Sequence record: MH460460.1
Reading direction: 5' to 3' (one strand)
Length of the DNA: 64,000 nt
Shown here: positions 4,749 through 62,423 of the stretch, piece by piece
Position numbering within the stretch: the stretch's first letter is position 1
How the letters are laid out: every line of letters starts with the position of its first letter
Position numbers and translations under genes: made by a program
Notes under the pieces: model-generated
Told to the model about the DNA's origin: nothing
Databases searched by the model: none
The model's input: the letters and a program-made list of their open reading frames with translations, nothing else

Positions 4749-4753
4749 ATATT

Positions 4754-4783: not shown

Positions 4784-4800
4784 CAATTCTGGAGCCAAAA

Positions 4801-44417: not shown

Positions 44418-44473
44418 TCTGCAAAATAGTGTCCAAAATTTCGGTGGTTTTTGCCGCCTCGTTTTGATACACT
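44417..44473 (+). promoter_or_regulatory. Bipartite-box promoter, copy 8
   Basis: GTCTGCAAA-ATAG-TGTCCAAAA-N29-TACACT. Confidence 0.8.
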
Positions 44474-44479
44474 ATTTGG

Positions 44480-44553
44480 ACAGGGCAGCAATGCCCTACA
44501 AGATTCAACGTGAAGTGGAAACTTTTTGTAGGCAGGGAAGCCTACACTTTTTT
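44480..44553 (+). ncRNA. Putative ~73-nt small RNA
   Basis: Between promoter copy 8 and a terminator; 5' GCAA-tetraloop hairpin; no RBS-bearing ORF. Confidence 0.55.
44527..44553 (+). terminator. Intrinsic terminator
   Basis: TGTAGGC-AGGGAA-GCCTACA-C-TTTTTT. Confidence 0.8.
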
Positions 44554-44578: not shown

Positions 44579-44635
44579 CTCTGCAAAATAGTGTCCAAAA
44601 TTGCGATTGATAATATCGCTACTTTCCATCACTAT
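44579..44635 (+). promoter_or_regulatory. Bipartite-box promoter, copy 9
   Basis: CTCTGCAAA-ATAG-TGTCCAAAA; TTGATA at the -35 position; CACTAT at N29. Confidence 0.75.
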
Positions 44636-44701: not shown

Positions 44702-46315
44702 ATGGCAATTGCAACCTCTACCAAACTGATCGGCAAAAACATCGTTCTGCTGGACGGCACCAAAACCAAAATCACTGACGCAATGGCAACTGGTTATAAA
44801 GTTGCTGATCGTACTGTTCGCGTTGCGTCAAAGCAAGTTGCTAAGAAAGGCGCTTGCTATTACGAAATCCCGGTTACGTCTCTGCGTGAACTGATCGATT
44901 CCGGTGAAGGTTATGTTTCTTTCGCTGACAAAGCGATGCAGAAAAAAGTCGGCACTGATGCTTTCCTTGAAAAACCTGCTAAAACTTCTGGCCGCAAACC
45001 GAAAGAAGAGAAAACTTCTGGCCGCAAACCGAAAGAAGAGAAAACTTCTAACGTGCGTCCGAAACGTGGTAGCAAACCTACCAAAGAAGAAGACGAAGCC
45101 GAAGAAAAATCATCACGTCGCGTTAAACGTCGCGGCAATAGCGATGCAGGTTTCGGCGCTCTCGCTGACTTCCTGATCAACGGCGGTAACAGCAAGAAGA
45201 AAGTTTCTCTCTCCACAATCGATCAGGATCTGGCGACTGTTCTTACTGAACGTCTGGTTAGCACGGTTAAAGATACCTCGCTGGCTAAATTCGACCGCAA
45301 CAATGCGCTGATCGAAAACGCATTTGATGTTGGCTACTCAACTGAATTCGATGCGACTGGCGGTGACGTTCGCGTAACGCTCAATATCAAATACGCGCTG
45401 GAACAACCGGAACCGGAAGAAGTAAGCGGCGGTTTCGAAATCTCTCCGGAACTGGCGAAGAAAATCAAAGCGCGTGTTGGTAAAACTGTTGGCAAAAAAC
45501 TGGCTGCGGCAATCGCTGGACACCTCGGCGTTGAAGCAAGCGATATGACAGCGGGAACTCTGCTGGTTCGTGAAGGTGAGGATGGTCAGTTTGTTTTCTG
45601 CGGCGCAAGCAGCGAAGACAATAACAAAGCTGTTCTGTTCAACACTGAAAGCGAAAAATTCCGTACTGTAGGCGGCGCGTCTCTGGCTAACTACTCCATC
45701 GTCGAAGAAGACGAAGAGGAAGAGGAAGACGAAGAAGACGAAGACGAAGAAGAAATTGAAGAGGAAGAGGACGAAGACGAAGACGACGGCGAAGCCGAAG
45801 ACGACGATGCCGAAGACGATTCCGAAGAAGGCGAAGATGACGCGGAAGGTGAAGACGACGATTCCGAAGATGCTTTCGAATACGCTTCCGTAAATAAAAA
45901 GCAACTGGCGAACGTAGACAAAAAGATCACGGCTAAAAATCTGCCGATGCTGTCTAAACTTTGGGGCGTGCCGCAAAGCGCTCTGATTACTGGTCTGAAA
46001 CTGACAGACGGCGATGATACTTTTGTGTTTATCGGTATGGACGAAGACGGCGATCTGCTGGTTGTCGAAGAAGGCGCGAAGGAAGTTGTAGCATTTGACG
46101 CTGACGATATCTCAAGCCTGTCTGGTTACTCTCCGGTTGTTGGTGAAGCCGAAGACGACGCAGAAGAAGATGGCGAAGATTTCGAAGATGACGGCGAAGA
46201 CTACGACGATATGGACATTGACGAACTGCGCGATGTTGTAGTTCAGAAAGGTCTGGCAAAAGTTCGCGCCGCCGAAAACATGACGGAGAAAAAACTCCGC
46301 GCTCTGCTGAAATAA
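44702..46315 (+). CDS. Modular protein: basic N-terminal region, two repeated domains, D/E tracts, C-terminal HeH-like module
   Basis: AGGAG RBS; 537 aa; C-terminal DDMDIDELRDVVVQKGL...MTEKKLRALLK. Confidence 0.9.
   Translation: MAIATSTKLIGKNIVLLDGTKTKITDAMATGYKVADRTVRVASKQVAKKGACYYEIPVTSLRELIDSGEGYVSFADKAMQKKVGTDAFLEKPAKTSGRKPKEEKTSGRKPKEEKTSNVRPKRGSKPTKEEDEAEEKSSRRVKRRGNSDAGFGALADFLINGGNSKKKVSLSTIDQDLATVLTERLVSTVKDTSLAKFDRNNALIENAFDVGYSTEFDATGGDVRVTLNIKYALEQPEPEEVSGGFEISPELAKKIKARVGKTVGKKLAAAIAGHLGVEASDMTAGTLLVREGEDGQFVFCGASSEDNNKAVLFNTESEKFRTVGGASLANYSIVEEDEEEEEDEEDEDEEEIEEEEDEDEDDGEAEDDDAEDDSEEGEDDAEGEDDDSEDAFEYASVNKKQLANVDKKITAKNLPMLSKLWGVPQSALITGLKLTDGDDTFVFIGMDEDGDLLVVEEGAKEVVAFDADDISSLSGYSPVVGEAEDDAEEDGEDFEDDGEDYDDMDIDELRDVVVQKGLAKVRAAENMTEKKLRALLK
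44981..45049 (+). repeat. Perfect 30-bp coding tandem repeat, 2.3 copies (KTSGRKPKEE)
   Basis: AAAACTTCTGGCCGCAAACCGAAAGAAGAG at 44981 and 45011, partial copy at 45041. Confidence 0.95.
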
Positions 46316-46381
46316 AAATTAACGGAATGGCGCGGTAACACTGCCGCGCTTCCTCAACCTATTTAAAAGTTTTAAGGAAAA

Positions 46382-47314
46382 ATGAAAATGGCTATCACTC
46401 CTAACAAAGATTTGGTTAACGTTGTTGTTCGTCTGCTGGATGGCAAAACTTCTCGCATCACTGGCATTACTAAAACTGGTTACACGGTTGAAGGTTCTGA
46501 TAAGCAAATTCCGATGACGGAACTTGTGCGTAAAGGCCGCGTGTTGCAGCAACTCGATCCGGCGAAGCTGAAAGAAATTCCGGCTGAACAAACTTATCTG
46601 ATGAGCGACGGCTATCTGCATATCCATACCCGCGATGCAATGCGCCGCATCAAGAAAGGCGAGACGGTTGATATCCCGCCGTCAAATTCTGAATGGCTGC
46701 GCAAAACCAAAACGGTGAAGGTTGTGAAAGTGAAAGGCGAATCTAAGCCTAAAAAGATTACGCCGAACAAACCTGTTCGCGCTGACGCTTCTAAAGTTAA
46801 GGCTCCGAAGCGTCTTAAAACTGACGCGCAGAAAACTAAAAAGGTTGTGGCAAAAGCTGCGCCTAAATCAACTCCGGTTGATCGTAGCGCCGAAACTGCT
46901 GAGACGTTGTTCCTAGTAATCGAAAACGCTCGCACGAATCGCAAAGCGTTTAAAGAGTTTAAAGCGATTGTCTCGGCTGCGATGGGTGTTACGGCAAAAG
47001 ATCTGCCGGATACTGCAAGCGAGATCATCGAAAAATTCGGCGCTGCGAAAGTACGCAAAGGTCTGGCGGCTCTGTCTGAGCATTTCAATCGCCGCCGTGC
47101 GGAACTGAGTTTGCCTCGTAGCTTGAAAGCGTTTATCTCAAGCGGTCGCTTAACTCTGACTCCTGCGCAATTCCGTCAAGTGCTGGAAGTAATCGCTCCG
47201 ACGATTCCGAAAGAGATTGTTGCTGACGTTGCTAAGTATTATTTCAACGGCGAATTCGTTATCAGCAAAACCCCGGATCGCAACACCACGAAAAAATCTA
47301 ACGGTGGCAATTAA
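46382..47314 (+). CDS. Basic (Lys-rich) protein whose N-terminal domain is homologous to that of 44702..46315
   Basis: RLLDGKTSRITGITKTGYTV vs VLLDGTKTKITDAMATGYKV. Confidence 0.85.
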   Translation: MKMAITPNKDLVNVVVRLLDGKTSRITGITKTGYTVEGSDKQIPMTELVRKGRVLQQLDPAKLKEIPAEQTYLMSDGYLHIHTRDAMRRIKKGETVDIPPSNSEWLRKTKTVKVVKVKGESKPKKITPNKPVRADASKVKAPKRLKTDAQKTKKVVAKAAPKSTPVDRSAETAETLFLVIENARTNRKAFKEFKAIVSAAMGVTAKDLPDTASEIIEKFGAAKVRKGLAALSEHFNRRRAELSLPRSLKAFISSGRLTLTPAQFRQVLEVIAPTIPKEIVADVAKYYFNGEFVISKTPDRNTTKKSNGGN

Positions 47315-47676
47315 TGGAAAAATCTGACGTGATCGTAAATGGAATCTTCGGTCAGGTTTATTCCCGCCTTGTTCTCGCCGCAACGCAACGCGTTCTTGTT
47401 TACTACAATGAATTGTGTCCTGTTGTTTTCGGCATTCAGTTTTCAAAAATGAATAAAGAACAGGCCGATGTGATTTGGGATATTCTGATCGAAACAATGC
47501 GTATGGATGCGAAGGCGGGGCGGCTTCCTCTCGCCGCTCTTTATATCTCGCGCAAGTATGAAAAGAAACCCGGCGCAGGCTTCTGGTCTGCATATCACAC
47601 ATTTTACGGCTCTGAAATCTCGGAAGATGAGTGGTCTGAACTTGTGGAAAAAATCTGGAATTCATATTCCATGTAG
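47314..47676 (+). CDS. Hypothetical protein
   Basis: TAATG overlap. Confidence 0.8.
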   Translation: MEKSDVIVNGIFGQVYSRLVLAATQRVLVYYNELCPVVFGIQFSKMNKEQADVIWDILIETMRMDAKAGRLPLAALYISRKYEKKPGAGFWSAYHTFYGSEISEDEWSELVEKIWNSYSM

Positions 47677-47684
47677 GAACGATC

Positions 47685-48161
47685 ATGAAAAAGAAATTTA
47701 CTCCGAAAATCCCGCGCTCGAAGGTTGTGCCGCCTAGCGAGCGTGCCGAAATGGATCAGCTTGTCGCCTATTATCTTTCATCGGTAGGTAACAGCATGAC
47801 GATGGTAACGCAACTGACGTTCTTCAACGTCACGAACTACTGGCACATGACAGACGTTCACGATCCCGAAGCGTCCACGCAGAAGAATCACAAACTTCTG
47901 CGTGAGATAACGCAAAAGCTGAACAAATACTGTAAAGATAATGGGAAGCCTCTTTCTTTGCTTCCTTTGCCCGATCAGCCCGGCGTTGAATTGAACGGCG
48001 AAACTGTTGTGGTAATTCCGTGGGAATTTTTAAATACCACGGAATCGCGTCAAGCTGTTGATGCGTTATTCGAAATGGTATCTGCGAATGGTAATACAGA
48101 TCTGGTTGCAGATGCTGATCTGAGGGATAAATATGTTTTTAGGGCACCTACTGACGTTTGA
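47685..48161 (+). CDS. Hypothetical protein
   Basis: AGGA RBS. Confidence 0.8.
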   Translation: MKKKFTPKIPRSKVVPPSERAEMDQLVAYYLSSVGNSMTMVTQLTFFNVTNYWHMTDVHDPEASTQKNHKLLREITQKLNKYCKDNGKPLSLLPLPDQPGVELNGETVVVIPWEFLNTTESRQAVDALFEMVSANGNTDLVADADLRDKYVFRAPTDV

Positions 48162-49401
48162 AGATCGTCAAAAGCTGTTAAAACTTTATGGCTGGAAAAT
48201 CATTGATACCTCCCCAAAGTATCTTGAATCTTCCAAAATGGTTTGTGGCGTTCGCCATGTTCGAACTAAGTACGGTGCGCGTGAGCAAGTGTATGATATT
48301 TTGTTCCCGCGCATTCGTGCGAAAACGGTTCTGCGTTTGTTTAAAAACTTGCGCCGTGGTCAACGTGGAATGCTGTTAGAACAAATTTCAATTCTGTTCG
48401 AATTGGGATTGGGTGTTCCGAAGCAAAAACAAATCGCCGACTATATCCTGCATTTAGACAATGTGGACGATCAGGAAGTTGGAATCAAGTACATTGGTAA
48501 ACTGATAAAACAGTACATCGCCAATTACAAGTTTTCGATGGACGATCATGATTACATGTACTGCGCTCAATTCACTGAGCAATTGTTGCTGATGAAGAAA
48601 TTCATCGGGAAGACAAAACAGAACGTGAAAAAATCAGTGCGCGTTCCGGAAGGAAAGCCGTGTGTTATGGTTTATTCGCTGACTGACTTCAACGGTGCGA
48701 AATTCAGTTTGGTAGATGCTTACGCATTTTCATCGAACGGTTTTCCGATACCGATTTCAACATCTGTGATGCGAAAAGAGTTTGGTGCTGTCCCGCGCCA
48801 GTTTAACAGCTACGCGTTGAAGTCGCACGGACAGTATATGTTGGTTTTCGGTATTCTACATTGGAACGAAGACGGCGAAGAAAACTTCCAGCACATGCAA
48901 ACGCTGGACGATGATGAATACGAAGTTCTGGTTGACCATTACGATAAGTATTGTTCGAAAGAACTTCTTGCGATGCGCAAGTTCCGCGATGTTGATCGCG
49001 AAGTGCATAACGCACATCGTCACGCAATTGAAGTTCTGGCAGTTAAAGAAGATGCAACCAAAAAAGAAAGGCGTCTGGTTCGCGAAGCGGAAACATATTT
49101 CGCTGAACGTGAGAAAGCTGTAAAGCAACTATCACGATTAGAACGAAAGGCCGCGAGCAAACTTGCTGAATCTGGCCCGGTTGCTTCTGCTCAATTCTTC
49201 GCTCTCGATATCGGGGCAATTGGAATTAGCCGCAAGCTGCGTACATTGGTTAGCACACCGCCTGAAACTCTCGCGAAAAGTTTAACCGCGTGGGGATTCA
49301 CAACGGCGTTGAATGCGAATCCTAAATGTCTATCTTCTCGAATCTATTACGGCGTAACTTCTACGCGCCGTAGCTGGCAAATTGAAACGGAGAAAAAATA
49401 A
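48133..49401 (+). CDS. Basic hypothetical protein
   Basis: 422 aa; TAATG overlap with the next gene. Confidence 0.8.
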   Translation: MFLGHLLTFEDRQKLLKLYGWKIIDTSPKYLESSKMVCGVRHVRTKYGAREQVYDILFPRIRAKTVLRLFKNLRRGQRGMLLEQISILFELGLGVPKQKQIADYILHLDNVDDQEVGIKYIGKLIKQYIANYKFSMDDHDYMYCAQFTEQLLLMKKFIGKTKQNVKKSVRVPEGKPCVMVYSLTDFNGAKFSLVDAYAFSSNGFPIPISTSVMRKEFGAVPRQFNSYALKSHGQYMLVFGILHWNEDGEENFQHMQTLDDDEYEVLVDHYDKYCSKELLAMRKFRDVDREVHNAHRHAIEVLAVKEDATKKERRLVREAETYFAEREKAVKQLSRLERKAASKLAESGPVASAQFFALDIGAIGISRKLRTLVSTPPETLAKSLTAWGFTTALNANPKCLSSRIYYGVTSTRRSWQIETEKK

Positions 49402-52349
49402 TGAATTCCTCTCAAACTTTCGGAACCGCCGCACATGCGGCAACTGTTACGGAACAGAATCTGAATGCAGGTTCTCCGGCAACTAAAAGCACGGTAATTG
49501 TTGTGCTGTGTCCGACTGTAAACGGCAACCAAATTTTCCGTGCGGAAAATAGCGGCAATGTTTCTCAAACAGTCGCGCAGGGTAAAGCGCTTAATCGTCT
49601 GACTGATCTTCTGGCGATGGCAGGCGATAACGCTGGTCATGAACTGATGAGCGCTGCCGCTTCTATCGACGAGCGCTGCAAGCTGAAAGACAGTGCTGCG
49701 ATGATTCTTCGCTATACTGTAAATGGTAGTGTAGAACGTCTCCAGAAAACTTTGTCTGAGGCGTTGTTTAAGGTCGGCGAAAAAGCTGCAAATGATAATA
49801 CTACGTTAGCGTCGTATGCCAGTCGTTTTGGTGTTCACGCAATCGCGGTATCTGCGGAAAGTAATTCATACGCAATCGTTACAGCGATTCGTGATCAACT
49901 GGAAGCGTTCGACCGCAACGAAAGCAATTTTATCGTTGCGCAGAAAGCAAGTGTTGAGCAAATCAATGCTCCGGTTATCGACTGGTCTGCAACTTCCGCA
50001 AACGTTGTTCTGGAAGGTGCTGCGTTAAGTTTTGTAGTTCGCTCGGAAAAAACCCGCGTGAATTTCCTGATTAATCCTATTAAGGGGAATAATGTTGTGA
50101 GTAACGATCAGAAAGCTCTGTCTGTTTTCAGCCGCGAAAATCAGGCGTCCGTAACTATGGAAGAAAAAGTCGCTGCACTCGAAGCTCTCGGTTACGATCT
50201 CGGCGCTATGCCGGATGAAGAAATTGCGCTGTCCTACGATAGCGAGCGCGTTGATTTTCTGGAAGGCGCTGGCGTTGAAGTAAACTCCGGCGACGAAGGC
50301 GAAACTGACGACGCCGAAGAATCGGAAGAAGATTCCGAAGAAGGCGAAGAGGAAGAGGAAGAAGAGGAAGACGATTTCTCCGCTTCTGAAACTCTGGCAG
50401 AAATTCTGACTAACGCCCAACTGGATCGCGCTCAACTGAAAAAGCTGGTGTTCCTCGCAGGCGGTAAAGTGTTTACCTCCGACACCGAAGAAACTCTGAC
50501 GGTGAAACTGCTGGAACTGGTCGAAGATAAAGACTACAGCGAATTCTTCCAGTTTGCGCTGGACGCTAATGAACGTCTCGGCGGCGTTGAAGGTTTTGCT
50601 GATTTCCTTCACAACGAAAGTGTTCTCGCTACCGACGAAGAAGAATCTGAGGAAGAAGATTCCGAAGATGACGGCGACGAAGGCGACGATGCCGAAGGCG
50701 ACGACGATGATTCCGAAGATGAGGATGATTCGGAAGACGAAGATGGCGAAGATGAAGACGACGAAGACGAAGAAGATCTTTCCTTCAACTCTGTTGTCGA
50801 ATTCATCGAACTGATCGGCGGCGATCTGAATCGCGAAGTTATTCGCGCAATTGCTCGCTCCGAAAACTTCGGCCTGAAAACTTACAAGAACGAAGACGCT
50901 GCTGCAATCTTCGAACGTGTAGTTGAAGTGCTGAACAATAACGAACTTTCTCCGGAAGATTTCGAACAACTGATTCACGATCTCGCGCAGATCGAAGTTG
51001 TTGCCGCTGCCTATCCGGAATGGGCTGAGTACGAAGTCAATCCGACTGACTACACTGAACTGTTTAACTTCGAAGGCGGTTCCCTGTCTCACGAACAGCG
51101 CGTTGCCGCTCTCGAAGCTGCGGGTAACGATCTCGAAGGTATGGGCATGGTTGCCGTGCTGAAACTCTTCGAAGAGTATCGCCGCGAAAATGGTTACGGT
51201 CAGGAAAGCGAAGAAGCTGCTGACGAAACTTACGCGCTGGATTCTGATGCGGAAGACGAAGGCGAAACTGACGAAGGCGACAACGCCGACGAATCTTCCG
51301 ACGAAGAGGAATCCGAAGAGGAAGAATCTGAGGAAGAAACCGAAGAAGAAAACGACGAAGCGTTTGTTTCCGATTCTTCTGAAAGTGATATCGGTACTTT
51401 CCTGCGTGTTCGTCAGGAACAAATGCTGCTGGTCAACTTCACGCTGACTGATCGCAGTACGTTTGAAGATCTCGCCGAAGAACTGCGCGATCAAAACGGT
51501 GTTGATTACCGCGTACCAATCAACATGAACGACGAAGCCGAAGGTTCTATGTACCTGCCGCTGACTGTCGCGAGCGATCTGCTGTCTGGTTCTGCTGCGC
51601 TGCCGTTCATGTCTGATCGCAAAACTTTCAACGTGGAAGACTACGCTGAAAAACTGGCTAACACTATGCGCGGTCAAATTTCTGCGCTGCTGTATGAAGG
51701 CCGTCTGGAAGCTGGACAAGATCCGTACACTAGCGGTCTGGTGCTCGGTGATTTCGTTGAAGACGAAGACGAAGATCTGGATGAAGACGAACTGAGTTCT
51801 GACTATCTGAACGAACTGGTCGGCGATCACATTCCGATGGCGTCTCTGTACAACGCACATGTTGGCGTGCGTCCGGTTGTAGTTGATACCGAAAGCACTG
51901 TTCTGAATACCATCGTGCTTAACATTGCAATGCCTTGCATTTGGGGCATCGGCAAGAAGAAAGTAAAAGATCTGGTAATCAGCACTTACAACCGTGTGCT
52001 TGCGCACATCGGCGAAACCGATATTAAAGTTTATGTTGGTTTCACGCTGAATTCCGGTTCACTGGTTTCTGATGAAAACCTGCAATTGGTTGTTCGTTCT
52101 GTTGGCGAAATGGCAAGCGAAGAAATCGCGGTGCATTCTTTCTCTTCTAACGATGTTCAGCGCATCGAAGAAAGCGAAGATCTGGTTGAAGCCGCGCATT
52201 CTGTCGGCACCGAAAACCTGCCGCTGGCGCTGCTGTCCTCCGGTATCGCTGACGCTGCATTTGCGAACGGCGGTGATCTGATTGTGATTCTGTCTCCGGC
52301 GGGTGATAGCGAAGACTACTCCGACGACGAAGACGAATCCGAAGAGTAA
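49401..52349 (+). CDS. 982-aa very acidic modular protein
   Basis: Several D/E tracts alternate with duplicated helical modules. Confidence 0.9.
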   Translation: MNSSQTFGTAAHAATVTEQNLNAGSPATKSTVIVVLCPTVNGNQIFRAENSGNVSQTVAQGKALNRLTDLLAMAGDNAGHELMSAAASIDERCKLKDSAAMILRYTVNGSVERLQKTLSEALFKVGEKAANDNTTLASYASRFGVHAIAVSAESNSYAIVTAIRDQLEAFDRNESNFIVAQKASVEQINAPVIDWSATSANVVLEGAALSFVVRSEKTRVNFLINPIKGNNVVSNDQKALSVFSRENQASVTMEEKVAALEALGYDLGAMPDEEIALSYDSERVDFLEGAGVEVNSGDEGETDDAEESEEDSEEGEEEEEEEEDDFSASETLAEILTNAQLDRAQLKKLVFLAGGKVFTSDTEETLTVKLLELVEDKDYSEFFQFALDANERLGGVEGFADFLHNESVLATDEEESEEEDSEDDGDEGDDAEGDDDDSEDEDDSEDEDGEDEDDEDEEDLSFNSVVEFIELIGGDLNREVIRAIARSENFGLKTYKNEDAAAIFERVVEVLNNNELSPEDFEQLIHDLAQIEVVAAAYPEWAEYEVNPTDYTELFNFEGGSLSHEQRVAALEAAGNDLEGMGMVAVLKLFEEYRRENGYGQESEEAADETYALDSDAEDEGETDEGDNADESSDEEESEEEESEEETEEENDEAFVSDSSESDIGTFLRVRQEQMLLVNFTLTDRSTFEDLAEELRDQNGVDYRVPINMNDEAEGSMYLPLTVASDLLSGSAALPFMSDRKTFNVEDYAEKLANTMRGQISALLYEGRLEAGQDPYTSGLVLGDFVEDEDEDLDEDELSSDYLNELVGDHIPMASLYNAHVGVRPVVVDTESTVLNTIVLNIAMPCIWGIGKKKVKDLVISTYNRVLAHIGETDIKVYVGFTLNSGSLVSDENLQLVVRSVGEMASEEIAVHSFSSNDVQRIEESEDLVEAAHSVGTENLPLALLSSGIADAAFANGGDLIVILSPAGDSEDYSDDEDESEE

Positions 52350-52358
52350 TCTGTAAAT

Positions 52359-52392
52359 AAATGGTGTGGGGCAAATTGCTCTGCACCATTTT
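52359..52392 (+). terminator. Probable terminator
   Basis: AAATGGTGTGGGGC-AAATT-GCTCTGCACCATTT. Confidence 0.7.
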
Positions 52393-52403
52393 AAGGATTC
52401 CTA

Positions 52404-53156
52404 ATGTCTGATACGCAAATTGAAGTTTTACATCGGACACTGTTTTCAACGCGTCAGTCACTTGATGAAAACATCATGGCACGTCGCGCAACCGAAAAGG
52501 TGTTGGATGAGCGCCTGAGTGAATTAGGCCGCTGTCAGGTTCAATTAAGCATTGCTCAAGAGCGAATTCTGAATCTCCAGACTGAATATAATAATGTTGT
52601 GGAGAAATCGGAAAGCAAAGCGAAGGATATGGAAGAAACTTTCCGTACCTCCGAAGCAAAGCTGAAAGAAGAAATAGTAATTCTGAACGACAAGATTTCG
52701 GAACTGCGTGCGCTCTGCCGTGATATGCCGGAAACTCCTGCGGAACAACTGCTGGAAAACGTACTGCATAAAACGATGGCGTATCTGCATTCGACTGTGG
52801 TGTATTTCGCTGCCCTCACGTTGAATTCCAATCCGCAATCTCTGGCTGGTAAAGAGTTGCTTGCGCTGACGAAAAAGCAAACCCTGAATCCGGGCAAATT
52901 GTTTTCACTATCTGTAAAGGAAAAGCAGATAGTCTTAGAAAACATTCGTTCGTTTGTGCAAGCAGAACTTGATAATTCTGAATACACAAACATCCGGGCG
53001 GTAATTACTGCAATGACCGCTTCGGATAAATCGTGGAAGACGTTTCGCGATAGCCTGAAAAATTCTAAGGTGCTTTTCTCACTCGCATCTGACAAACTGG
53101 AATTTGACTCTGCGGTAAACGCGGTCGTTGAATTCATTCTTGAACAATTGAAGTAA
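52404..53156 (+). CDS. Coiled-coil hypothetical protein
   Basis: AAGGA RBS; long heptad-like N-terminal half. Confidence 0.8.
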   Translation: MSDTQIEVLHRTLFSTRQSLDENIMARRATEKVLDERLSELGRCQVQLSIAQERILNLQTEYNNVVEKSESKAKDMEETFRTSEAKLKEEIVILNDKISELRALCRDMPETPAEQLLENVLHKTMAYLHSTVVYFAALTLNSNPQSLAGKELLALTKKQTLNPGKLFSLSVKEKQIVLENIRSFVQAELDNSEYTNIRAVITAMTASDKSWKTFRDSLKNSKVLFSLASDKLEFDSAVNAVVEFILEQLK

Positions 53157-53178
53157 TGAACGGGAGTTCGAAATAATC

Positions 53179-53757
53179 ATGGCTAAATCAAAGTCCACCT
53201 CACTGGTTCCGAAACGCATTGAGCGTATCACGAAAAAAGCTGGTGCAATCGCGCAGGTCAAATCCAAACAAACCGATCTGGCGCACGATATCGAAATCTC
53301 GACTCGCGGCGCACACGAAGTTTCCGGTTTCGTGATCGAAGTTACCGCTGACGATAGCGTAACGATCCGCCACAAGAAAGGCGCTGGTAGTTCCAAACAG
53401 ATCGTAAGCACGTTTACCAAAAACCAGATCATTAGCTTTATCGGTGAAGCTGGCGGTATGGGGCAACTGCTGGTTGACGCGTACATGGTTGTTCAGGTAA
53501 TTCGCGGTCAAACTGTAAAAGTTAAAGACGATGTGATTATCGCAACTGATATTCAGACTGGCGAAGTCACTCGCATCGCAACCAACATTCCGGGCTACGA
53601 TGTTCGCGCAATTGTTGACGAAGCTGTTGCTTCTAAAAAGTACGGCACTCCGATTGCAGTTGAAAAGAAAAAAGGCGCGGGCAAGGTAGAAAAAATTGCC
53701 AAAGGCGGCAAAGATAAGTCCGGTAAAAAGAAAAAGAAGTCTGACGAAAACTTCTAA
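53179..53757 (+). CDS. Basic beta-rich protein, possibly Sm/SH3-like fold
   Basis: Lys-rich termini; EVSGFVIEVTADDSVTI...KNQIISF recalls Sm-fold spacing (weak). Confidence is for the ORF. Confidence 0.8.
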   Translation: MAKSKSTSLVPKRIERITKKAGAIAQVKSKQTDLAHDIEISTRGAHEVSGFVIEVTADDSVTIRHKKGAGSSKQIVSTFTKNQIISFIGEAGGMGQLLVDAYMVVQVIRGQTVKVKDDVIIATDIQTGEVTRIATNIPGYDVRAIVDEAVASKKYGTPIAVEKKKGAGKVEKIAKGGKDKSGKKKKKSDENF

Positions 53758-53772
53758 TTCGGTTCCGGCCTG

Positions 53773-53853
53773 AATCTGTAAAGTAACGTTGAAGGACAGA
53801 ATCTGTAAATCAATTCTGTCAGACAGAAACTGTAAACAGTTAATGTCAAACGC
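53773..53853 (+). repeat. Degenerate 27-bp tandem repeat x3, each unit starting AAWCTGTAAA
   Basis: CTGTAAA at 53776, 53803 and 53830; GACAG ends units 1 and 2. Confidence 0.75.
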
Positions 53854-53961
53854 CACTGATTAATTTCGGTGGCGTCAGTTAAAAACATTTTTCTCTTAAT
53901 CTGTAAATAGTAATTGAACAAAGCGTTCATTACTGAACTTTCCTAAAGGATAAAATGAATC

Positions 53962-54744
53962 ATGGCTAAAGCAAAGAAAACCTCTAACGTAGCAATGGAA
54001 ACTCTGGCTAAAATGGCTGGCCTGCTTGTAGAAGCGGCTGCCGATGCAGAAGTTGCAGAACTTCTCGCCGAAGCCGGTCTGACCGTTGCCGCTAAAGGTA
54101 AAGGCAAAGCTAAAGCTGCTAAAGCTGAACCGAAAGCAAAAGGCGGCAAGAAAAAGAAAGTAACTGCCGCACAAATCGTTGAAGCCATCGAAGATGGTGA
54201 GTCCATCGAACTCGAAGGCACCGACGAAGAAGTTCTGCGCGAAGCCGTGGTCAAAGCGAAACTGACCAGTAAGAAAAAAGCGGCGAGCCTTGATGAAGAG
54301 GAACTGCTGGAACTGATTCAGGAAGCGTTGGGTTCTTCTGATGACGAAGAAGAAGACGACGAAGACGAAGACGACGAGGATGATTCTGATGAAGATGATT
54401 CCGACGACGAAGACGACGAAGACGAAGACGACGAGGATGATGAAGACTCGGACGACGACGAAGACGACGAAGACGGCGACGACGAAGATGATGAGGACGA
54501 CGAGGACGACGAAGACGAGGACGAAGATGACGAAGATGAAGATCGTGATCTGGAAGACCTCGACGAAGACGAACTCCGCGCGTTAGCCATCGAAGAAGGC
54601 GTGTTCACCAAAGCGCAGGCCAAAAAGAAAGACGAAGATGCACTCCGCGAAGCGCTGGAAGCTCACTTCGCTGGTGACGAAGATGAAGACGAAGACGACG
54701 AAGACTTCGACGACGAAGACGACGAAGACGAAGACGACGAGTAA
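53962..54744 (+). CDS. Bipolar protein: K/A-rich segment, two HeH-like modules, very long D/E tracts
   Basis: ~65-70 nearly pure D/E residues; modules DEEVLREAVVKAKL...DEEELLELI and DEDELRALAIEEGV...DEDALREAL. Confidence 0.9.
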   Translation: MAKAKKTSNVAMETLAKMAGLLVEAAADAEVAELLAEAGLTVAAKGKGKAKAAKAEPKAKGGKKKKVTAAQIVEAIEDGESIELEGTDEEVLREAVVKAKLTSKKKAASLDEEELLELIQEALGSSDDEEEDDEDEDDEDDSDEDDSDDEDDEDEDDEDDEDSDDDEDDEDGDDEDDEDDEDDEDEDEDDEDEDRDLEDLDEDELRALAIEEGVFTKAQAKKKDEDALREALEAHFAGDEDEDEDDEDFDDEDDEDEDDE

Positions 54745-54826
54745 TTAATCTTCAACTGCGGCACGCCCCGCTAAGTTGTATGACGAGCGCGGGGCAAAAA
54801 ATCTTCAAAAAACTTTGAAGAAAATT

Positions 54827-54863
54827 TTGTAGAAGTATGTTGAACATGCTAATGTACTTCTAC
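54827..54863 (+). promoter_or_regulatory. Sigma70-like promoter overlapped by an inverted repeat
   Basis: TTGTAG-N17-TAATGT with TG extension; GTAGAAGTA/TACTTCTAC inverted repeat. Confidence 0.55.
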
Positions 54864-54921
54864 GCAGAAAACGAATTCTGTTTTTACTCCACAACGAACA
54901 AATTGAATTTAAGGATTTATC

Positions 54922-55440
54922 ATGTCTAAGAAAGTAATCTCCGGCCTGAACAAACAAATCAAATCCATCGAAAAATCCGATGCCGCTCTGGTGAAGACCA
55001 TCGAAGGTTTGCAGAAACAGCGCGAAAATCTGGCGTCTACCAAAGACGGTCTGACCGAACAGGTTGCCGCTCTGTCCGGCGAAGCTGCTGCTCCGGCTGC
55101 TAAAGGCAAAGCGAAAGCTGAACCGAAAGCGAAAGCTGCTAAAGCTGATCCGAAAGGCAAAGGCAAAAAAGCCGCCGAAGAAAAACCGGCTAAAGCCAAA
55201 AAAGAAAAAGCTGCTAAAGCTGAGAAGCCTGCTAAGGCTGACAAGAAAGCGGCTAAAGGCGAAGGCAAAAAAGCCAAAGCTGAAAAGCCCGCCAAAGCTG
55301 ATAAAAAAGCTGCGAAAGGCGAAGGCAAAAAAGCCAAAGCTGAAAAGCCTGCTAAGGGCAAAAAAGTGAAAGGCGAAAAAGCCAGCAAGAAAAAAGGTAA
55401 AAACGCCGACGCAGGTTTTGAATTCGAACTGGACGATTAA
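54922..55440 (+). CDS. Histone H1-like (AlgP/Hc2-type composition) K/A/P-rich protein with N-terminal coiled coil
   Basis: AAGGA RBS; KAEKPAKADKKAAKGEGKKA repeats; assigned on composition only. Confidence 0.85.
   Translation: MSKKVISGLNKQIKSIEKSDAALVKTIEGLQKQRENLASTKDGLTEQVAALSGEAAAPAAKGKAKAEPKAKAAKADPKGKGKKAAEEKPAKAKKEKAAKAEKPAKADKKAAKGEGKKAKAEKPAKADKKAAKGEGKKAKAEKPAKGKKVKGEKASKKKGKNADAGFEFELDD
55216..55356 (+). repeat. 60-bp coding tandem repeat, ~2.3 copies, with synonymous divergence
   Basis: 20-aa period KAEKPAKADKKAAKGEGKKA. Confidence 0.85.
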
Positions 55441-55466
55441 TAGTTCCCTGCGCTGATTAAGTTGAT

Positions 55467-55499
55467 ACGGGTTAGGGATTATCTCCCTAGCCCGTTTTT
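55467..55499 (+). terminator. Intrinsic terminator
   Basis: ACGGGTTAGGGA-TTATC-TCCCTAGCCCGT followed by TTTT. Confidence 0.85.
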
Positions 55500-55533
55500 C
55501 GTTTCTGGTCGATTTTTCTCGATAGGTTTCCAA

Positions 55534-55875
55534 ATGGATCTTCACTCACGTTTCAAAAAACTTAACGAAGACTTGCTCGAACTTCAACAAGCTGTTCATC
55601 GCGTCGTTCGTATCTCTCCTTCAAAGTTCGCCGTTTGTTTTTATGATCGTCATGAGCAATCGCTTCGAACCAACGTTATTGATTCTCGTACAGCACACGA
55701 AATAAAACTCATTCAAGAAATGTCTGGCGCTGAGTTGCAATCCTATGGCGCTTTCGTTTCAGCCATTCAAGAATGGTGTGAAGCTGAATCCCCCGGTGAA
55801 TTCCCTATTCCATTAGACAAAGCAGACTCTGATAGCTACCGCACGCTAATTGATGCGATGACGATCCGGGAATAG
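55534..55875 (+). CDS. Hypothetical protein
   Basis: ATG 55534 after AGGT. Confidence 0.7.
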   Translation: MDLHSRFKKLNEDLLELQQAVHRVVRISPSKFAVCFYDRHEQSLRTNVIDSRTAHEIKLIQEMSGAELQSYGAFVSAIQEWCEAESPGEFPIPLDKADSDSYRTLIDAMTIRE

Positions 55876-55878
55876 CAA

Positions 55879-55935
55879 CTCTGCAAATCTGTGTCCAAAA
55901 CGTCGATAGCTTATCTAATACTTTCGTGCTAGAAT
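55879..55935 (+). promoter_or_regulatory. Bipartite-box promoter, copy 10 (drives the topoisomerase operon)
   Basis: CTCTGCAAA-N4-TGTCCAAAA-N29-TAGAAT with TG extension. Confidence 0.8.
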
Positions 55936-55993
55936 AGGCGGCGGGGAAATCCGTACATTAGACGTGTGAGGGAATCACGTTCGGAGAAAAATC

Positions 55994-58054
55994 ATGGCGA
56001 AGAAAGCCGAAGTAAAAGTTCTAAAAAAGAAAGTAGTAGCCAAAGCGGTTGGAAAAGAAATCAAGAGCAAGAAAAATGCTCAAGAGGGATTCACCGCTCT
56101 TTCTGTAATGGAAGGCTTGCGTAAAAACCCCGGTATGTATCTCGGCGAACCGGGCGAAGATATGGCATATCGTTGCGTCAAAGAAGTTACCGACAACGCA
56201 TACGATGAAGCCGTGGCAGGACGAAATAAATTAATCGAAGTGATCTTCAACGAAGACAAAGATATTTATATCGTTGCTGATGGTGCTGGCGGCATTCCGA
56301 CAACTGTTAAAAAGATTTACGATGGATCTTCCGAAGCGATCATGACTTCCGCATTTACGCGTGTTCACGCTGGCGGTAAATTTGATAACGCTGCATACAA
56401 AACTTCTGCTGGTACGCATGGTGTTGGTGTTACTGCTGTTAACGCCGTGTCAGAAAGAATTCGTGTGTGGTCGAACTTCGAAAAGAAAACAAAAGGCATG
56501 GAGTATTCCAAAGGCGAATGCGTAACAGCAATCAAGAATTGGGAAGTCGATGCTGATGTTGTGAAGCTGCTGCAAGATCCGGCGAAAAAATACGGAACGA
56601 TTGTCGCGTGGACTCTCGACCAAACTGTTGTGAGTATCGACTCGCGCCGTGGTAAAAAACTGCCGAAGGATTACACTCACGCAAAACTTAACGTTGAGCG
56701 TACTCGCGAATGGTTGCAGGCAATGTCTGATCTCAATCCGGGATTAGAGATTCGCTTTACGCACATCAAAGATAAAAAAGGTAAGCGCACTGTTTTCTTA
56801 AACAAGAAAACTATGAGCGATGTAGTTAAACGCATTGCAGACGAGCGCGAATTGGTTTTGGACGGCAAGCCGTTCGAACTGAAAACTGATTACGTTTCTA
56901 TCGCGATCAGTTGGGCTGATTATCCGGATACCGATTTGTTGCGCACGTTCGTAAACACGTCTCCTACTCTGGATCATGGCTGGCACGTAACAGGTTTCAG
57001 AAGCGCTCTCGAAGCTGCATTGAAACCGTATCTGCCGAAAGCGAAGAAAGGCGGCAAAACATTTACGGCAAGTGATTTGCTTGTCGGTGTTATTGGCATG
57101 TTCGACTGGCGTATGCACGGCGCACAATATACATCGCAGGTAAAAGATAAACTTGCTAGTCGTGTTGAAAAAGAAGTTCAGGCGATCATTGAAAAACCGT
57201 TGACCGATTTCTTTGCGAAAAATAAATCTCTCGCGAAGAAAATCATCAAACGCGCAGAAGCAATGATGAAAGGCCGTGATGAGTTGAGCGCTGTTATTCG
57301 TTCGATGGCTGACACGAAGAAAAAAGTTGCTGGTAATTCGTTGCCTCCGTTCCTCGAAGCTGCGCCGCGTTGTAAACCGTTTGAGCGTGAATTGGTTGTG
57401 GTGGAAGGTGACTCCGCAGGCGGTACAGGTAAGAACGCTCGCGATCCTTACTATCAAGAGATCATGAAAGCTGGCGGTAAACCTCTTAACGGTTTGAAAG
57501 CGCCGCTGGCAAAAGTGCTTGTGCATAAACAGGTGCAAGGTTTGTTGGTGAGTATTGGCGCGGATTTAAAAACACTCGATCCCAAAGCAGAGAATCCAAC
57601 TCTGAGCACGGAAAAATTACGCATTGGTAATCTGCTGTTCCTCGCAGATGCTGACCCGGATGGCAGTCACATTAACACGCTGTTCCTCGCTGTTATCTAT
57701 CGACTGTTGCCGGATATGATGCGCGAAGGCCGTGTATGGGTTGTCGATGCTCCACTCTATAACGTGATGTACAAAGGCAAACATTATGGCGGCATGACGT
57801 TTGAAGAGTGTCGTGCGATTGCGCCTAGCGCCGTTAAGGATAGCGAAATCGTTCGTGCGAAAGGTTGGGGTGAAGTTAACCCTGATGTTCTGCGTGCGAT
57901 TGCATTCGATCCGGAAACGCGCCGACTCATTCGAATCAATCCGTTTGAGAACGCAGAGCAAGAACGTTTCTTCCGTGGTGTCGTTGCGGAGGACGCGATC
58001 TATCGCCGCCGTTTGTTAGGTCTGGTTGAAGTAAATGCAGGGGATGAAGAATAA
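55994..58054 (+). CDS. gyrB: Type IIA topoisomerase subunit B (GyrB/ParE-like)
   Basis: GHKL ATPase: [41 protein letters not shown]: [20 protein letters not shown]. Confidence 0.95.
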
Positions 58055-59736
58055 TGGCAACCATTAAGCCGAAGAAAAACGCGAAGCCAGAAAAAACGAA
58101 AGTTAAACCTGCTGCGAAATCGAAAGCCGTTGCGAAGAAATCCAAAGGCATTGAAGTTGCCGATATCAAGCCGGGTAAAAAACTCAAAAAGAAAACTGAT
58201 ACTGCAATCACTACCGCAGTAGAAAGTAAGTATCCGCTCAAAGGACAGAAGCCTGAAAACATTCGTGACGAAGGTTTGGCTGCGTTTACTGAGCGTGAGT
58301 TGCGTAAGTATGGATCTTACGTTGTGGAAGATCGCGCCATTCCAGATTTTCGTGATGGTTTGAAACCTGTTCACCGTGCGATCATTTGGGCAATGTCGGA
58401 TCTCAATCTGTTGCCGTCCGGTGGTTTTAAAAAGAGTGCGCGTGTTGTTGGTGATGCTCTCGGTAAATATCATCCTCATGGTGATGGTGCGTGTTATGGC
58501 GCAATGGTTACGGTTGCTAACACCGTGCCCCCTGCTGTAGATGGTCAAGGCAATTGGGGAACGCCAACTGATCCATTTGCTGCGATGCGTTATACCGAAG
58601 CAAAACAAAGCCGCTTCACGCAAATGTTTTTGCTCGATAAAAACTATTTGCAAGTTACGCCGATGGTTAGCAACTTCTCTAACGATATGAAGTTGCCTCT
58701 TCACCTTCCGGCGCTGTTACCGTTCATGTTGTTTGCTGGTACGGTTCCGGCTCCGGCGTATGGTGTGAAGTGCGGAAACCCAACGTTCACTTTCGCCAGC
58801 GTTGCGCGTGTCGTAATTGATATGCTTAACGGCGTTGAATACGATCACAAAAAACTCGCGAAGACATTAGTTATTCAGCATGAGTTTGGTTGTAAGAACA
58901 TTACTTCCAGTAGCGAAATGTTGAACCTGATGCGAACCGGGCGCGGCAAAGTAACTTACGAACCGGAAATGAAAATTGATCTGAAACGCAAAACGATTGT
59001 GATTCAGACGTTCGTTCCTCTCGGATTCGCGTCGGAAGACGGCATTGAAAAAATGCTGACGAAGTTCGCTTCTATTCAGGGCGTATCAACTGCGCATTCT
59101 GTTGGCGGCGAGCGAAATCCGGATGCGGGTACTTATGGTTGTGCTGTTGAAGTTGTGATCGGTCGCGGTGTTGATGAAGATCGTTTCTATGAGATCGCGC
59201 AGGAAGTTCAAAAGCTCGTTACCAAATCCGTTTCGTATATTCTCGGTGTCACTGTTCGTCATGCAGATAAGCCGAATAGCTTTAAGTATCTCGATTATCT
59301 CTCCTACTTCAAAGCGTGGGTGACGTATCGTAAGAAACTCGAAGTGCGTATGTTGGATTGGTTGATTACGCGTGCGCAGAAAGAACTCCACTTGCAGGAA
59401 GTTTATTTATTCGCAGTAGAGAACAAAGACAAGTTGCTTAAAGCGCTGCCTAAAGTTCTGGCTTCGAAGACTCCTGATGAGGCGCTCGCGAAAGCAATCA
59501 AGCTCCCGGTCGAAGATGCAAAAATCATTTTGGATCGTCAGGTGCGTAAACTGGCGACGCTTGAGAAAGCCGATCTGGTTGCGAAAATTAAATCGTTGAA
59601 ATCCGATATCGCTGGCTGGCAGAAAGGCTTGAAGGCTCCGGGCAAGTATGCAGGGAAAGACACGGAAGATCGTGTTGTTCGTTACTTGAAAAATCCGGAT
59701 GAGAACAAGCCTAAACTCGGCTACGGAAAACTGTAA
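58054..59736 (+). CDS. gyrA: Type IIA topoisomerase subunit A (GyrA/ParC-like), lacking the C-terminal pinwheel domain
   Basis: [37 protein letters not shown] (catalytic Tyr); only 560 aa. Confidence 0.95.
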
Positions 59737-59817
59737 ATACTAATTGGGATCTGTAGACTAGGAATATTCCTAATACTGTAAATAATAGTAATTAGGAACT
59801 GTAAACAGATCCCTTTT
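59731..59817 (+). other. Nested inverted repeats with four CTGTA(A/G)A copies
   Basis: Outer GGGATCTGT/ACAGATCCC; inner TTCCTAATAC/GTAATTAGGAA; palindrome TAGGAATATTCCTA. Confidence 0.7.
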
Positions 59818-61080: not shown

Positions 61081-61612
61081 AAATAGATTGTATGCGAATG
61101 AACGTAATGGATTAACGCAGTGTTGTATTTGTGGAACGTTCACGAAAGCAATTCACTGGCACCATACGATTCCGCAATCTCTCGGAGGCAAGGACAGTCT
61201 CCAGATTCCGTTGGATGGAAATTGCCACACTGCATTGCACGCTAAAGCGAGCGCGGTTGTGAGCAAGATGCACGGAAAAAGAAAAACTCCCGTTGGTGAA
61301 TTTTGGGATGATCCGAAAGCTGAACAGGCCGCCGAAGTATGGTTAAAAATCCTTGTCGATGCGATGCTTGTACCACCTGTCGATCCATCATCCAAAATGA
61401 TTTTGCTCCCGTCAATTCAGGTTGATGTGGAGACAAGACTCGCACTTGAATTGTTGAAGCGTGATACTCCCGGCATAACATCAATGTCGCAAGTTCTCCG
61501 CTTCTGCATAGAAGTAACACTTAAAATAAAGGGTTTGAGAAACGATGAGCAGCAAGAATTTTCGCACAGTAGATCTGAAAGAAATGGTAAAAAGCACCGT
61601 GACTTGTGGTGA
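61070..61612 (+). CDS. HNH-like zinc-binding domain fused to a ribbon-helix-helix-like domain
   Basis: CCICG...HWHHTIPQSLGG...LDGNCHTALH; C-terminal IQVDVETRLALELL...SMSQVLRFCI. Confidence 0.7.
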   Translation: MAAENRLYANERNGLTQCCICGTFTKAIHWHHTIPQSLGGKDSLQIPLDGNCHTALHAKASAVVSKMHGKRKTPVGEFWDDPKAEQAAEVWLKILVDAMLVPPVDPSSKMILLPSIQVDVETRLALELLKRDTPGITSMSQVLRFCIEVTLKIKGLRNDEQQEFSHSRSERNGKKHRDLW

Positions 61613-62423
61613 TTGCCGTGGTCTGAATCGTGATGTTCTTATTCCTTCTGCTACGAAGCCGTGTGAAAGTCTCGGCAAGTTGGAAGACAGTAAGATGTGC
61701 AAACATTTCCGCACGAACACTTACGATCTGCGTCGGCTGATGGAAGAAGGCGGTGATGGTCTTGTCGCTCTGTTCCAACTGTTCGGGAATATGGAAGAGA
61801 AAGATCTGCGCATCATTTCTATGATGCTGTTGCGTGAAGCAAACACGCGTAAGCATGGCGTGAAGATGGGGCAACCTGTTTTCATTCGTTACCGTGGGCG
61901 TGAGTCTCGCAATTATCTGAACAACTTTATGGCGGCACGTATTCTGGATATCGACGACAAAGAAATTCGTTTGATTTCTGAAACAGGCAATATCGTGCTT
62001 ACTTACCCTAACACCGGATTGGCTGGCCCGTCTGTTTATTCGAAGTCAGAATTTAAAACGCTGGCGAAGAAAATGAAAGCGGAAGGCAAGATTAACGATC
62101 CAGAACGCGAGATCAAAACCGTTAAGAAATATTTGCCAGAAGAAGATGTGAAATTTAAAGTTCCAACTATTCTGGATGGATTCTCTGTTCCCAACATGGA
62201 CGAAGTTGTGAAAGGCAAGGGCGGCAAGAAGAAACGTAAGACGAACACTCTCATTGATATCGTAAGCATGATTGATAGTGGTAGTCTGATGGGCGCTCAC
62301 GCTGATGACGAAGATGGTGCATTGGAGTTAGGCGAAGACCAATACCAAAGCACAACGAAAACTAAGGTCAAGCCTAAGAAGAAAAAACGTAAGGCTGGCC
62401 CGATTGAGTTAAGTGATTATTGA
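61545..62423 (+). CDS. Hypothetical protein with N-terminal Cys cluster and Lys-rich tail
   Basis: CGDC...C...CKHF; KVKPKKKKRK. Confidence 0.8.
   Translation: MSSKNFRTVDLKEMVKSTVTCGDCRGLNRDVLIPSATKPCESLGKLEDSKMCKHFRTNTYDLRRLMEEGGDGLVALFQLFGNMEEKDLRIISMMLLREANTRKHGVKMGQPVFIRYRGRESRNYLNNFMAARILDIDDKEIRLISETGNIVLTYPNTGLAGPSVYSKSEFKTLAKKMKAEGKINDPEREIKTVKKYLPEEDVKFKVPTILDGFSVPNMDEVVKGKGGKKKRKTNTLIDIVSMIDSGSLMGAHADDEDGALELGEDQYQSTTKTKVKPKKKKRKAGPIELSDY

Follow-up and report, generated by a model that had tools for sequence, protein, structure and literature searches.

A conserved, ordered module of polyanionic and polycationic proteins in PaBG/Lu11-like jumbo phages and its possible action on phage DNA

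The DNA analyzed here (the window) is a 64,000-nt stretch corresponding to the last 64 kb of the genome of the Dickeya jumbo phage vB_DsoM_JA13 (MH460460.1, 100% identity), and its end is the end of the record. Sequence comparisons identify genes JA13_306 to JA13_316 as a single module, conserved in the PaBG/Lu11-like ("Lupandier") clade of jumbo phages. The order of its strongly acidic and strongly basic, largely disordered proteins and their charges are maintained even where the sequences are not. These proteins probably constitute one functional system on DNA. To the narrower reading, that they act jointly on phage DNA within the cell in the replication phase as a DNA-organizing polyelectrolyte system, we assign a probability of roughly 0.35. 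A literature search turned up no earlier account of the module.

Order and charge are conserved across the clade

An earlier note, made from the sequence alone, had described a cluster of oppositely charged low-complexity proteins beside a phage topoisomerase. All of the open reading frames (ORFs) named in it were found on the plus strand where it had placed them, and they correspond to genes JA13_306 to JA13_318, which are annotated as hypothetical throughout, the topoisomerase subunits excepted (Table 1; window position 44702 is record position 234763, and coordinates refer to the window unless marked "record"). Amino acid composition confirmed the three proteins with long aspartate/glutamate (D/E) tracts (at 44702, 49401, and 53962) and the Lys-rich proteins (at 46382, at 54922, and, in its termini, at 53179), to which JA13_310, a basic protein absent from the note's list, can be added. 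When a tract was defined as at least 25 D/E within 30 residues, four ORFs of the window passed; three of the four lie inside 9 consecutive genes out of 100, a clustering that is marginal when judged from the window only (P ~0.06). Long antisense ORFs over the D/E tracts (e.g., 50025–52007 on the minus strand; 660 aa, Phe-rich) were rejected as genes, being artefacts of GAN codon repeats. Meanwhile, module order, tract positions, and net charges recurred in 11/11 related contexts (JA13, JA29, Y3, AD1, Alexandra, Yoloswag, NCTB, PaBG, and three distant metagenomic contigs labelled L014, L016, and L021), and chance therefore cannot explain the cluster.

Synteny holds over the whole block in Sasquatchvirus Y3, Alexandravirus (AD1 and Alexandra), and Yoloswagvirus, and the module extends over four genera of Enterobacterales phages, Phage NCTB, Pseudomonas phage PaBG, and the three contigs. 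The net charges of the JA13/Y3/AD1 proteins were −60/−56/−78 for 306, +30/+31/+27 for 307, −177/−190/−193 for 311, +13/+15/+14 for 313, −94/−90/−105 for 314, and +26/+30/+28 for 315. Tract positions coincided among the same three phages, in which amino acid identity outside the D/E columns was 26–63% for these six families, versus 59–64% for the topoisomerase subunits. Between JA13 and JA29 (~91% DNA identity), in-frame indels were concentrated in the low-complexity tracts, with net charge maintained. Across the module contexts as a whole, sequence identity fell to 20–50% or became undetectable, whereas order and charge were kept.

The more distant contexts repeat this pattern. In NCTB, the same succession stands upstream of gyrB/gyrA, with net charges of −118, +29, −85, +11, −100, and +28, and the 314-like protein is made of four units, each a D/E tract plus a helical module. 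In PaBG, a complete module was found at 88–96 kb (net charges of −60, +9, −31, +14, −93, and +31); gene length and a Foldseek match between the JA13_311 model and a 356-aa PaBG protein led to it, and a tblastn search bridging from NCTB to PaBG found no link. In each of the three contigs, the gene after a 313-family member encodes a mostly D/E protein (60% and 63% where computed); the next one encodes a coiled-coil protein with a Lys/Ala/Pro-rich region and a tail of the acidic-aromatic type, and 310- and 311-like genes lie upstream of the 313-family member. The invariant core is thus a triad, in the order of a basic-tailed beta-protein, a 44–67% D/E protein, and a coiled-coil, Lys/Ala/Pro-rich protein with an acidic-aromatic tail. 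This triad, its acidic member having ≥44% D/E, was present downstream of 306-, 310-, and 311-like genes in 11/11 contexts. Acidic-aromatic tails of the JA13_314/315 kind recur in NCTB, PaBG, L016, and L021.

Architecture of the charged proteins

The acidic proteins combine D/E tracts with folded or helical parts. JA13_306 has an N-terminal domain of ~65 aa, a basic linker (aa 91–128), two D/E tracts (aa 335–390 and 482–503), and a C-terminal helical module of ~40 aa (aa 503–536); orthologues were found in 58 phage records, NCTB among them, and the architecture is repeated in PaBG_131 and in a 451-aa protein of L016. The ~65-aa N-terminal domain of JA13_306 has a paralogue in JA13_307, where a Lys-rich linker (aa 107–162) comes next. 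A profile of this shared domain gave no significant match in PDB or Pfam. JA13_314 combines a basic N-terminus with two helical modules of ~40 aa and a 78-aa tract (aa 127–204, 91% D/E), and it ends in a D/E tail (aa 239–260) that contains one invariant Phe. Its counterparts, with 44–67% D/E, are NCTB_078, PaBG_125, and proteins of L014, L016, and L021. A sequence search of JA13_314 against PDB returned the acidic tails of MCM3 and MAK16 only, which are unrelated.

The earlier note had described short HeH-like helical modules interleaved with the acidic tracts, a description that held in part. With a hidden Markov model (HMM) seeded on the NCTB repeats, one helical module of ~40 aa was found both at the C-terminus of the 306 family and, in two to four copies, in the 314 family (domain E-values, 1e−13 to 1e−22); the same HMM did not detect it in JA13_311. 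The resemblance to HeH/SAP domains, however, consists of sub-threshold matches only: among 15 copies of the module, there were two matches to SAP (best E = 0.022), one to LEM (0.022), and one to Ish1 (0.1), all below the curated cut-offs. A search of PDB sequences with the module profile returned no HeH, SAP, LEM, or Rho-N protein, and single modules gave none either.

Both the charge analysis and structure prediction with AlphaFold2 (AF2) were run; the charges were confirmed, and the models of JA13_311 and JA13_313 showed folded cores with disordered charged segments. The JA13_311 model (mean predicted local distance difference test [pLDDT] score of 73) has a beads-on-string form with folded alpha/beta domains at both ends (predicted at ~28–225 and ~652–966), helical modules between them, and D/E linkers predicted to be disordered (295–324, 409–460, and 601–650). 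Foldseek gave it no significant fold neighbor in PDB, and its viral structural matches were clade members only, including a 420-aa protein (probably NCTB_076) and the 356-aa PaBG protein. For JA13_311, hhalign gave E = 8e−4, and every one of the 17 homologues lies on a contig of ~250 kb.

Among the basic proteins, JA13_313 has an all-beta core in its AF2 model (aa ~35–147, block-mean pLDDT 73–91), Lys-rich tails that are disordered, and a C-terminus of the acidic-aromatic type. Foldseek found no PDB fold relative for this model, and the viral matches were again clade members only; the family profile retrieved 59 representatives among 1.84 billion proteins, and NCTB_077 and PaBG_126 are homologues. 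In L021, a 313-like beta-protein is fused to a C-terminal D/E tract of ~95 aa (4240–5019 of the contig), a hint that the beta-domain and the polyacid act together. JA13_315 consists of a conserved N-terminal segment of ~52 aa that is probably a coiled coil, a 100-aa region of Lys/Ala/Pro/Glu repeats, and a C-terminal acidic tail in which two Phe residues are invariant, an architecture repeated in NCTB_079, PaBG_124, L016, and L021. The N-terminal helical segment gave weak matches to coiled-coil families only, and a large-database search with residues 1–60 returned nothing. The earlier note had called JA13_315 H1-like, and this likeness proved to be compositional: there was no Pfam or PDB sequence match to linker histone H1/H5 at E ≤ 0.1, and no match to Hc1 (PF07432) in Pfam or NCBIfam. 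Its assignment to the class of Lys/Ala/Pro-rich nucleoid proteins is accordingly one of composition and repeats, and its DNA binding or compaction is putative. As a separate observation, the NCTB protein BN7874_079 (L010, 20646–21230), which has the JA13_315 architecture, is annotated as "Large-conductance mechanosensitive channel", probably a misannotation.

Counterparts of JA13_310 are NCTB_075 (a weak BLAST match) and, by position and size, PaBG_128 and proteins of L014, L016, and L021, and PaBG_130 and PaBG_129 hold the position of JA13_308/JA13_309. An alternative TTG start of the ORF of JA13_316 at 55462 would add an extension (55462–55533) that overlaps a terminator-like hairpin, and the annotated ATG at 55534 is therefore the likelier start. 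Searches of all module proteins against Pfam, PHROGs, and NCBIfam returned PHROGs of unknown function and low-complexity noise only, and PDB sequence searches with JA13_310, JA13_311 (N- and C-terminal parts), JA13_313, JA13_314, and JA13_315 gave nothing meaningful. JA13_306, JA13_311, and JA13_314 had no Pfam or PDB match to the histone chaperones nucleoplasmin, NAP, and prothymosin beyond low-complexity segments.

Candidate regulatory motifs shared with other phage genes

Two motifs recur upstream of module genes. Motif A, whose extended form spans ~32 bp (ACT-CTGCAAA-N3-GTGTCCAAAAT-N2-CGNT), has nine copies in the window (9591, 23426, 30722, 34668, 38749, 42192, 44419, 44581, and 55881; 0.3 expected), all on the plus strand and all intergenic (record 199–246 kb); no copy was found in the rest of the JA13 genome, and the motif is not conserved in Y3, AD1, or NCTB. 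Motif A could be a promoter or operator specific to the phage, with a regulon that would include JA13_306 and the gene for topoisomerase II subunit B. Terminator-like hairpins bracket the module, two before JA13_306 and a strong one directly after JA13_315; in Y3, no counterpart of the latter was detectable at this place.

Motif B forms an array upstream of JA13_314, with three sites in tandem 27-bp repeats (53775, 53802, and 53829) and a fourth (53900) 62 bp before the ATG. A single site precedes JA13_312 (52350), a tandem array precedes JA13_319 (59731–59805), and sites of the form TCTGTAAA occur elsewhere at record positions 127786, 136001, 149741, 151780, 152419, 166473, 181137, 186280, and 187372. 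Motif B stands 36–67 bp upstream of the genes for DNA polymerase I and III, primase, both single-stranded DNA-binding proteins (SSBs), and a recombination endonuclease, and no copy precedes the capsid, sheath, tube, or protease genes. Motif B is likely a middle-class regulatory signal, and the shared motifs are indirect evidence that the module is expressed together with the replication genes. A sigma-70 promoter scan showed no enrichment. Separately, the 11-mer AAAACTTTRAA was found in two copies only, one upstream of JA13_315 (54809–54819) and the other upstream of the major capsid gene (record 98041, minus strand), in a scan of 214 kb of JA13 that excluded record 100–140 kb; the spacing to the start codon is not the same at the two genes.

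Topoisomerase II as a frequent neighbor

The earlier note's observation that both topoisomerase subunits carry Lys-rich N-terminal arms was correct, and the arms are kept in Y3, AD1, NCTB, and PaBG. Its placement of the cluster beside the topoisomerase holds for JA13 and also for NCTB but is not universal: in PaBG, the module and topoisomerase II are ~12 kb apart, and L016 has no topoisomerase within 10 kb downstream of the module. These two contexts rule out topoisomerase as an integral member of the module and indicate that it is a frequent neighbor.

Farther along the window, JA13_321 (61545–62423) and its relatives Y3_331, AD1_328, and PaBG_00113 are proteins of ~290 aa, several of which are annotated as "DNA topoisomerase 4 subunit A". 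This length is far too short for that subunit, which makes the annotation doubtful. The last part of JA13_321 is a Lys-rich tail that leads into an acidic-aromatic end.

Virion proteins and acidic tracts outside the module

The virion proteome of PaBG comprises 14 proteins (PMC7412058). None of the PaBG counterparts of the module (gp122–131) is among the 14 detected. This list was obtained from Coomassie-visible bands by tryptic matrix-assisted laser desorption/ionization analysis, a method by which very acidic or Lys-rich proteins are easily missed, and the absence is therefore only weak evidence against a virion role. The sequence record of Y3 carries no mark of proteins detected in particles.

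D/E tracts were also found beyond the range of the earlier note, namely in JA13_276, the fourth such protein of the window, and in JA13_130, a fifth outside it. JA13_276 matches the helical module weakly and in part, and its neighbors JA13_275 and JA13_277 have similar-looking helical segments. JA13_130 (record 98841–100799), annotated as "putative ATPase", lies between the prohead protease and major capsid genes and has a D/E tract of 27/30; it is probably a head scaffold or core protein, and PaBG_00082 appears to be its counterpart. In PaBG, an "AAA family ATPase" near topoisomerase II (PaBG_00151; L011, 5901–6779) carries a D/E tract of ~40 aa, indicating that acidic tracts are scattered more widely in the clade.

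Table 1. Positions of the module genes, neighboring genes, and sequence signals in the window
Feature	Position	Strand	Description
JA13_276	28043–30019	+	658 aa, net −75; D/E tracts aa 307–341 and 356–379; ~15 kb upstream of the cluster
Motif A, two copies	44419–44438, 44581–44600	+	20 bp, CTGCAAA-N3-GTGTCCAAAA; upstream of JA13_306
Terminator-like hairpins	44443–44458, 44527–44546	+	Flank the motif A copies and precede JA13_306
JA13_306	44702–46315	+	537 aa, 24% D/E, net −60
JA13_307	46382–47314 (annotated start 46388)	+	310 aa, net +30
JA13_308	47314–47676	+	Small, near neutral, kept within the module
JA13_309	47685–48161	+	Small, near neutral, kept within the module
JA13_310	48133–49401	+	422 aa, net +17; conserved basic module protein
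JA13_311	49401–52349	+	982 aa, net −177; five D/E tracts; acidic tail
JA13_312	52404–53156	+	250 aa, near neutral; coiled-coil-like N-terminal half
JA13_313	53179–53757	+	192 aa, net +13
Motif B array	53775–53907	+	Four sites (TCTGTAAA or ACTGTAAA); upstream of JA13_314
JA13_314	53962–54744	+	260 aa, 47% D/E, net −94
JA13_315	54922–55440	+	172 aa, net +26; 29% Lys, 23% Ala
Intrinsic-terminator-like hairpin (strong)	55467–55495	+	12-bp stem and T run; directly after JA13_315
JA13_316	55534–55875	+	113 aa; last conserved module gene; weak match to PaBG_122 (E = 0.003)
Motif A copy	55881–55900	+	Upstream of topoisomerase II subunit B
Topoisomerase II subunit B	55994–58054	+	Lys-rich N-terminal arm aa 3–27
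Topoisomerase II subunit A	58054–59736	+	Lys-rich N-terminal arm aa 5–31, continuing to ~aa 47

Discussion

The recurrence of the same order and charges in 11 contexts shows that the oppositely charged proteins make up one conserved, ordered module and not a chance collection, and the interpretation given in the earlier note is, as a whole, partly supported. Order and charge are kept where sequence is not, aromatic residues within the tracts are invariant, and the beta-domain is fused to an acidic tract in one context, which together point to selection on a joint physical property. That the core is conserved in phages with hosts as diverse as Pseudomonas, Enterobacterales, and aquatic bacteria would suit a basic phage function. 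Also in favor of the DNA-organizing reading are the helical module common to the 306 and 314 families, the motifs that module genes have in common with replication genes, and the absence of gp122–131 from the PaBG virion list. In the mechanism that we propose, JA13_315 would oligomerize by its N-terminal coiled coil while its Lys/Ala/Pro-rich region coats or bridges DNA. JA13_314, whose long D/E tract is flanked by short helical modules, may bind the JA13_315 polycation and buffer, deliver, or displace it, by analogy with the action of acidic disordered chaperones on linker histones. JA13_306 and JA13_311 could serve as multivalent acidic scaffolds carrying folded domains on D/E linkers; JA13_307, JA13_310, JA13_313, and the basic arms of topoisomerase would be additional cationic partners, and the acidic-aromatic C-terminal tails might act as docking peptides.

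Several observations weigh against joint action on replicating phage DNA. The summed net charge of the module at 1:1 stoichiometry is approximately −245, so that the acidic charge far exceeds the module's own cations, and no module protein matches a family or solved fold with a known function, the H1 likeness of JA13_315 being one of composition. The motifs bear on timing only indirectly: motif B could act as an operator and not as a promoter, and one of its sites may also drive an operon with a putative head-to-tail joining gene. An acidic tract also occurs at the head-scaffold position (JA13_130), and the published virion list is insensitive to proteins of this kind.

The stronger form of the idea is that the replicating genome is organized by a shell-less, charge-driven "phage chromatin" or condensate, in which an oligomeric polycation on DNA, a dedicated polyacidic chaperone, and acidic scaffolds recruit clients such as topoisomerase II via their basic arms. 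We regard this form as distinctly unlikely. The surplus of negative charge means that the module is not a simple balanced coacervate pair, and for a condensate scaffold the predicted structures would supply prerequisites only, namely long, oppositely charged disordered tracts and a multivalent architecture.

A different explanation is that the proteins are packaged or morphogenetic, the polycation neutralizing capsid DNA and the acidic proteins serving as scaffold, spacer, or ejection proteins; we consider it rather unlikely. Internal or core proteins of other large viruses neutralize packaged DNA, and a conserved core module would suit virion assembly. The strong tract of JA13_130 at the scaffold position keeps a morphogenetic role of acidic tracts plausible, the 11-mer before JA13_315 otherwise precedes only the major capsid gene in the 214 kb scanned (n = 2), and existing virion proteomics could have overlooked such proteins. 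Furthermore, terminase and portal share a strand arm with the replication genes, and gene position thus leaves room for a late role. However, gp122–131 lie outside the detected PaBG virion proteins, the module is apart from the head and tail gene blocks, motif B is common to the replication genes and missing before the capsid, sheath, and tube genes, and the predicted folds (JA13_311 and JA13_313) do not resemble a known virion protein.

Alternatively, the acidic proteins might mimic DNA or act as decoys and thereby tie up DNA-binding proteins of the host (e.g., nucleoid proteins, restriction enzymes, or RNA polymerase), with the polycation condensing or silencing host DNA; in other words, a takeover or anti-defence system. 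D/E-rich surfaces are a hallmark of known DNA mimics, the excess negative charge suggests targets outside the module, and universal host targets would permit conservation across hosts. Nevertheless, this explanation is likewise rather unlikely, and the earlier note's version of it, a large anti-defence arsenal, is argued against by the fixed order and core status of the module across distant hosts, unlike the highly variable anti-defence loci. No Pfam or NCBIfam match linked the module proteins to Ocr, ArdA, or other known mimic families, the motifs tie the module to the replication genes and not to a separate immediate-early set, and mimicry leaves the folded domains and the paired cationic partners unexplained. 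Least convincing, and in our view very improbable, is that these are neighbors with separate functions whose tracts are tolerated low-complexity linkers from replication slippage: in-frame indels do alter tract lengths between close strains, the window-only clustering is marginal, and D/E tracts also occur in the unrelated genes JA13_276, JA13_130, and PaBG_00151, but charge, tract position, and gene order outlast sequence similarity, the aromatics within the tracts are invariant, and L021 encodes a fusion of a 313-like protein with an acidic tail.

Comparison with known systems

The small folded mimics T7 Ocr, ArdA, SPO1 Gp46, and T4 Arn have patterned surface charge and are accessory genes that vary between phages. 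The module proteins are likewise strongly acidic phage proteins that could imitate DNA; they differ in that their tracts are disordered, in their size (up to 982 aa), and in belonging to a core, ordered set without a match to those families. The DNA-binding proteins bacterial SSB, T7 gp2.5, and T4 gp32 end in a short acidic tail that has a conserved aromatic residue; through this tail, partners are recruited and DNA is competed with. JA13_315, a putative DNA binder, also ends in an acidic tail with conserved aromatics, but it lacks an oligonucleotide/oligosaccharide-binding (OB) fold, and the phage has separate annotated SSBs (JA13_175 and JA13_222).

Phage proteins can organize infection by phase separation, as described for SPO1 Gp27 (PMC13401047). 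Gp27, however, is a single transcription factor with no sequence relation to the module, and no pairing of polyacid and polybase was described for it (PMC13401047). With the chimallin-based nucleus of Chimalliviridae, the likeness is a jumbo-phage strategy to organize replicating DNA; that nucleus has a protein shell and tubulin, nothing in this 64-kb window resembles either, as the earlier note had also recognized, and the JA13 clade is distinct. The shelled phage nucleus, which protects and organizes jumbo-phage DNA, is known in one family only, and how genomes of ~250 kb are organized in other jumbo phages is a question on which the module may bear. What is newly defined here is a deeply conserved module recognizable by its charge pattern, from Pseudomonas and Enterobacterales phages to aquatic metagenomes. 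Even if its proteins prove to be internal to the virion, ten linked gene families, all now annotated as hypothetical, are defined, and at least one misannotation (NCTB BN7874_079) is corrected.

JA13_315 is similar in composition (~29% Lys and 23% Ala) to the C-terminal domain of H1, chlamydial Hc1/Hc2, and bacterial Lys/Ala/Pro-rich nucleoid proteins, and like them it has short Lys/Ala/Pro repeats, the number of which changes through in-frame indels. Proteins of the Hc1 family (PF07432) are predicted in aquatic "moraphages" (PMC12619734), a precedent for H1-like genes in large aquatic phages, although from a different family. JA13_315 differs from this group in having its own N-terminal coiled coil, an acidic-aromatic tail, and always a polyacidic neighbor, with no match to the H1 globular domain or PF07432. 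This pairing has a parallel in the acidic disordered histone chaperones, namely prothymosin-alpha with H1, nucleoplasmin, and the H2A–H2B chaperones with their acidic-aromatic anchors. The module resembles them in having long D/E tracts with embedded aromatics beside a polycation, and the same binding logic is proposed here; it differs in the lack of homology, in its phage setting, and in its tracts being flanked by a phage-specific helical module of ~40 aa. Should these proteins indeed handle DNA, bacterial viruses would have their own version of the linker histone–acidic chaperone partnership, and the module would be a natural system in which function is kept as a charge pattern rather than as a sequence.

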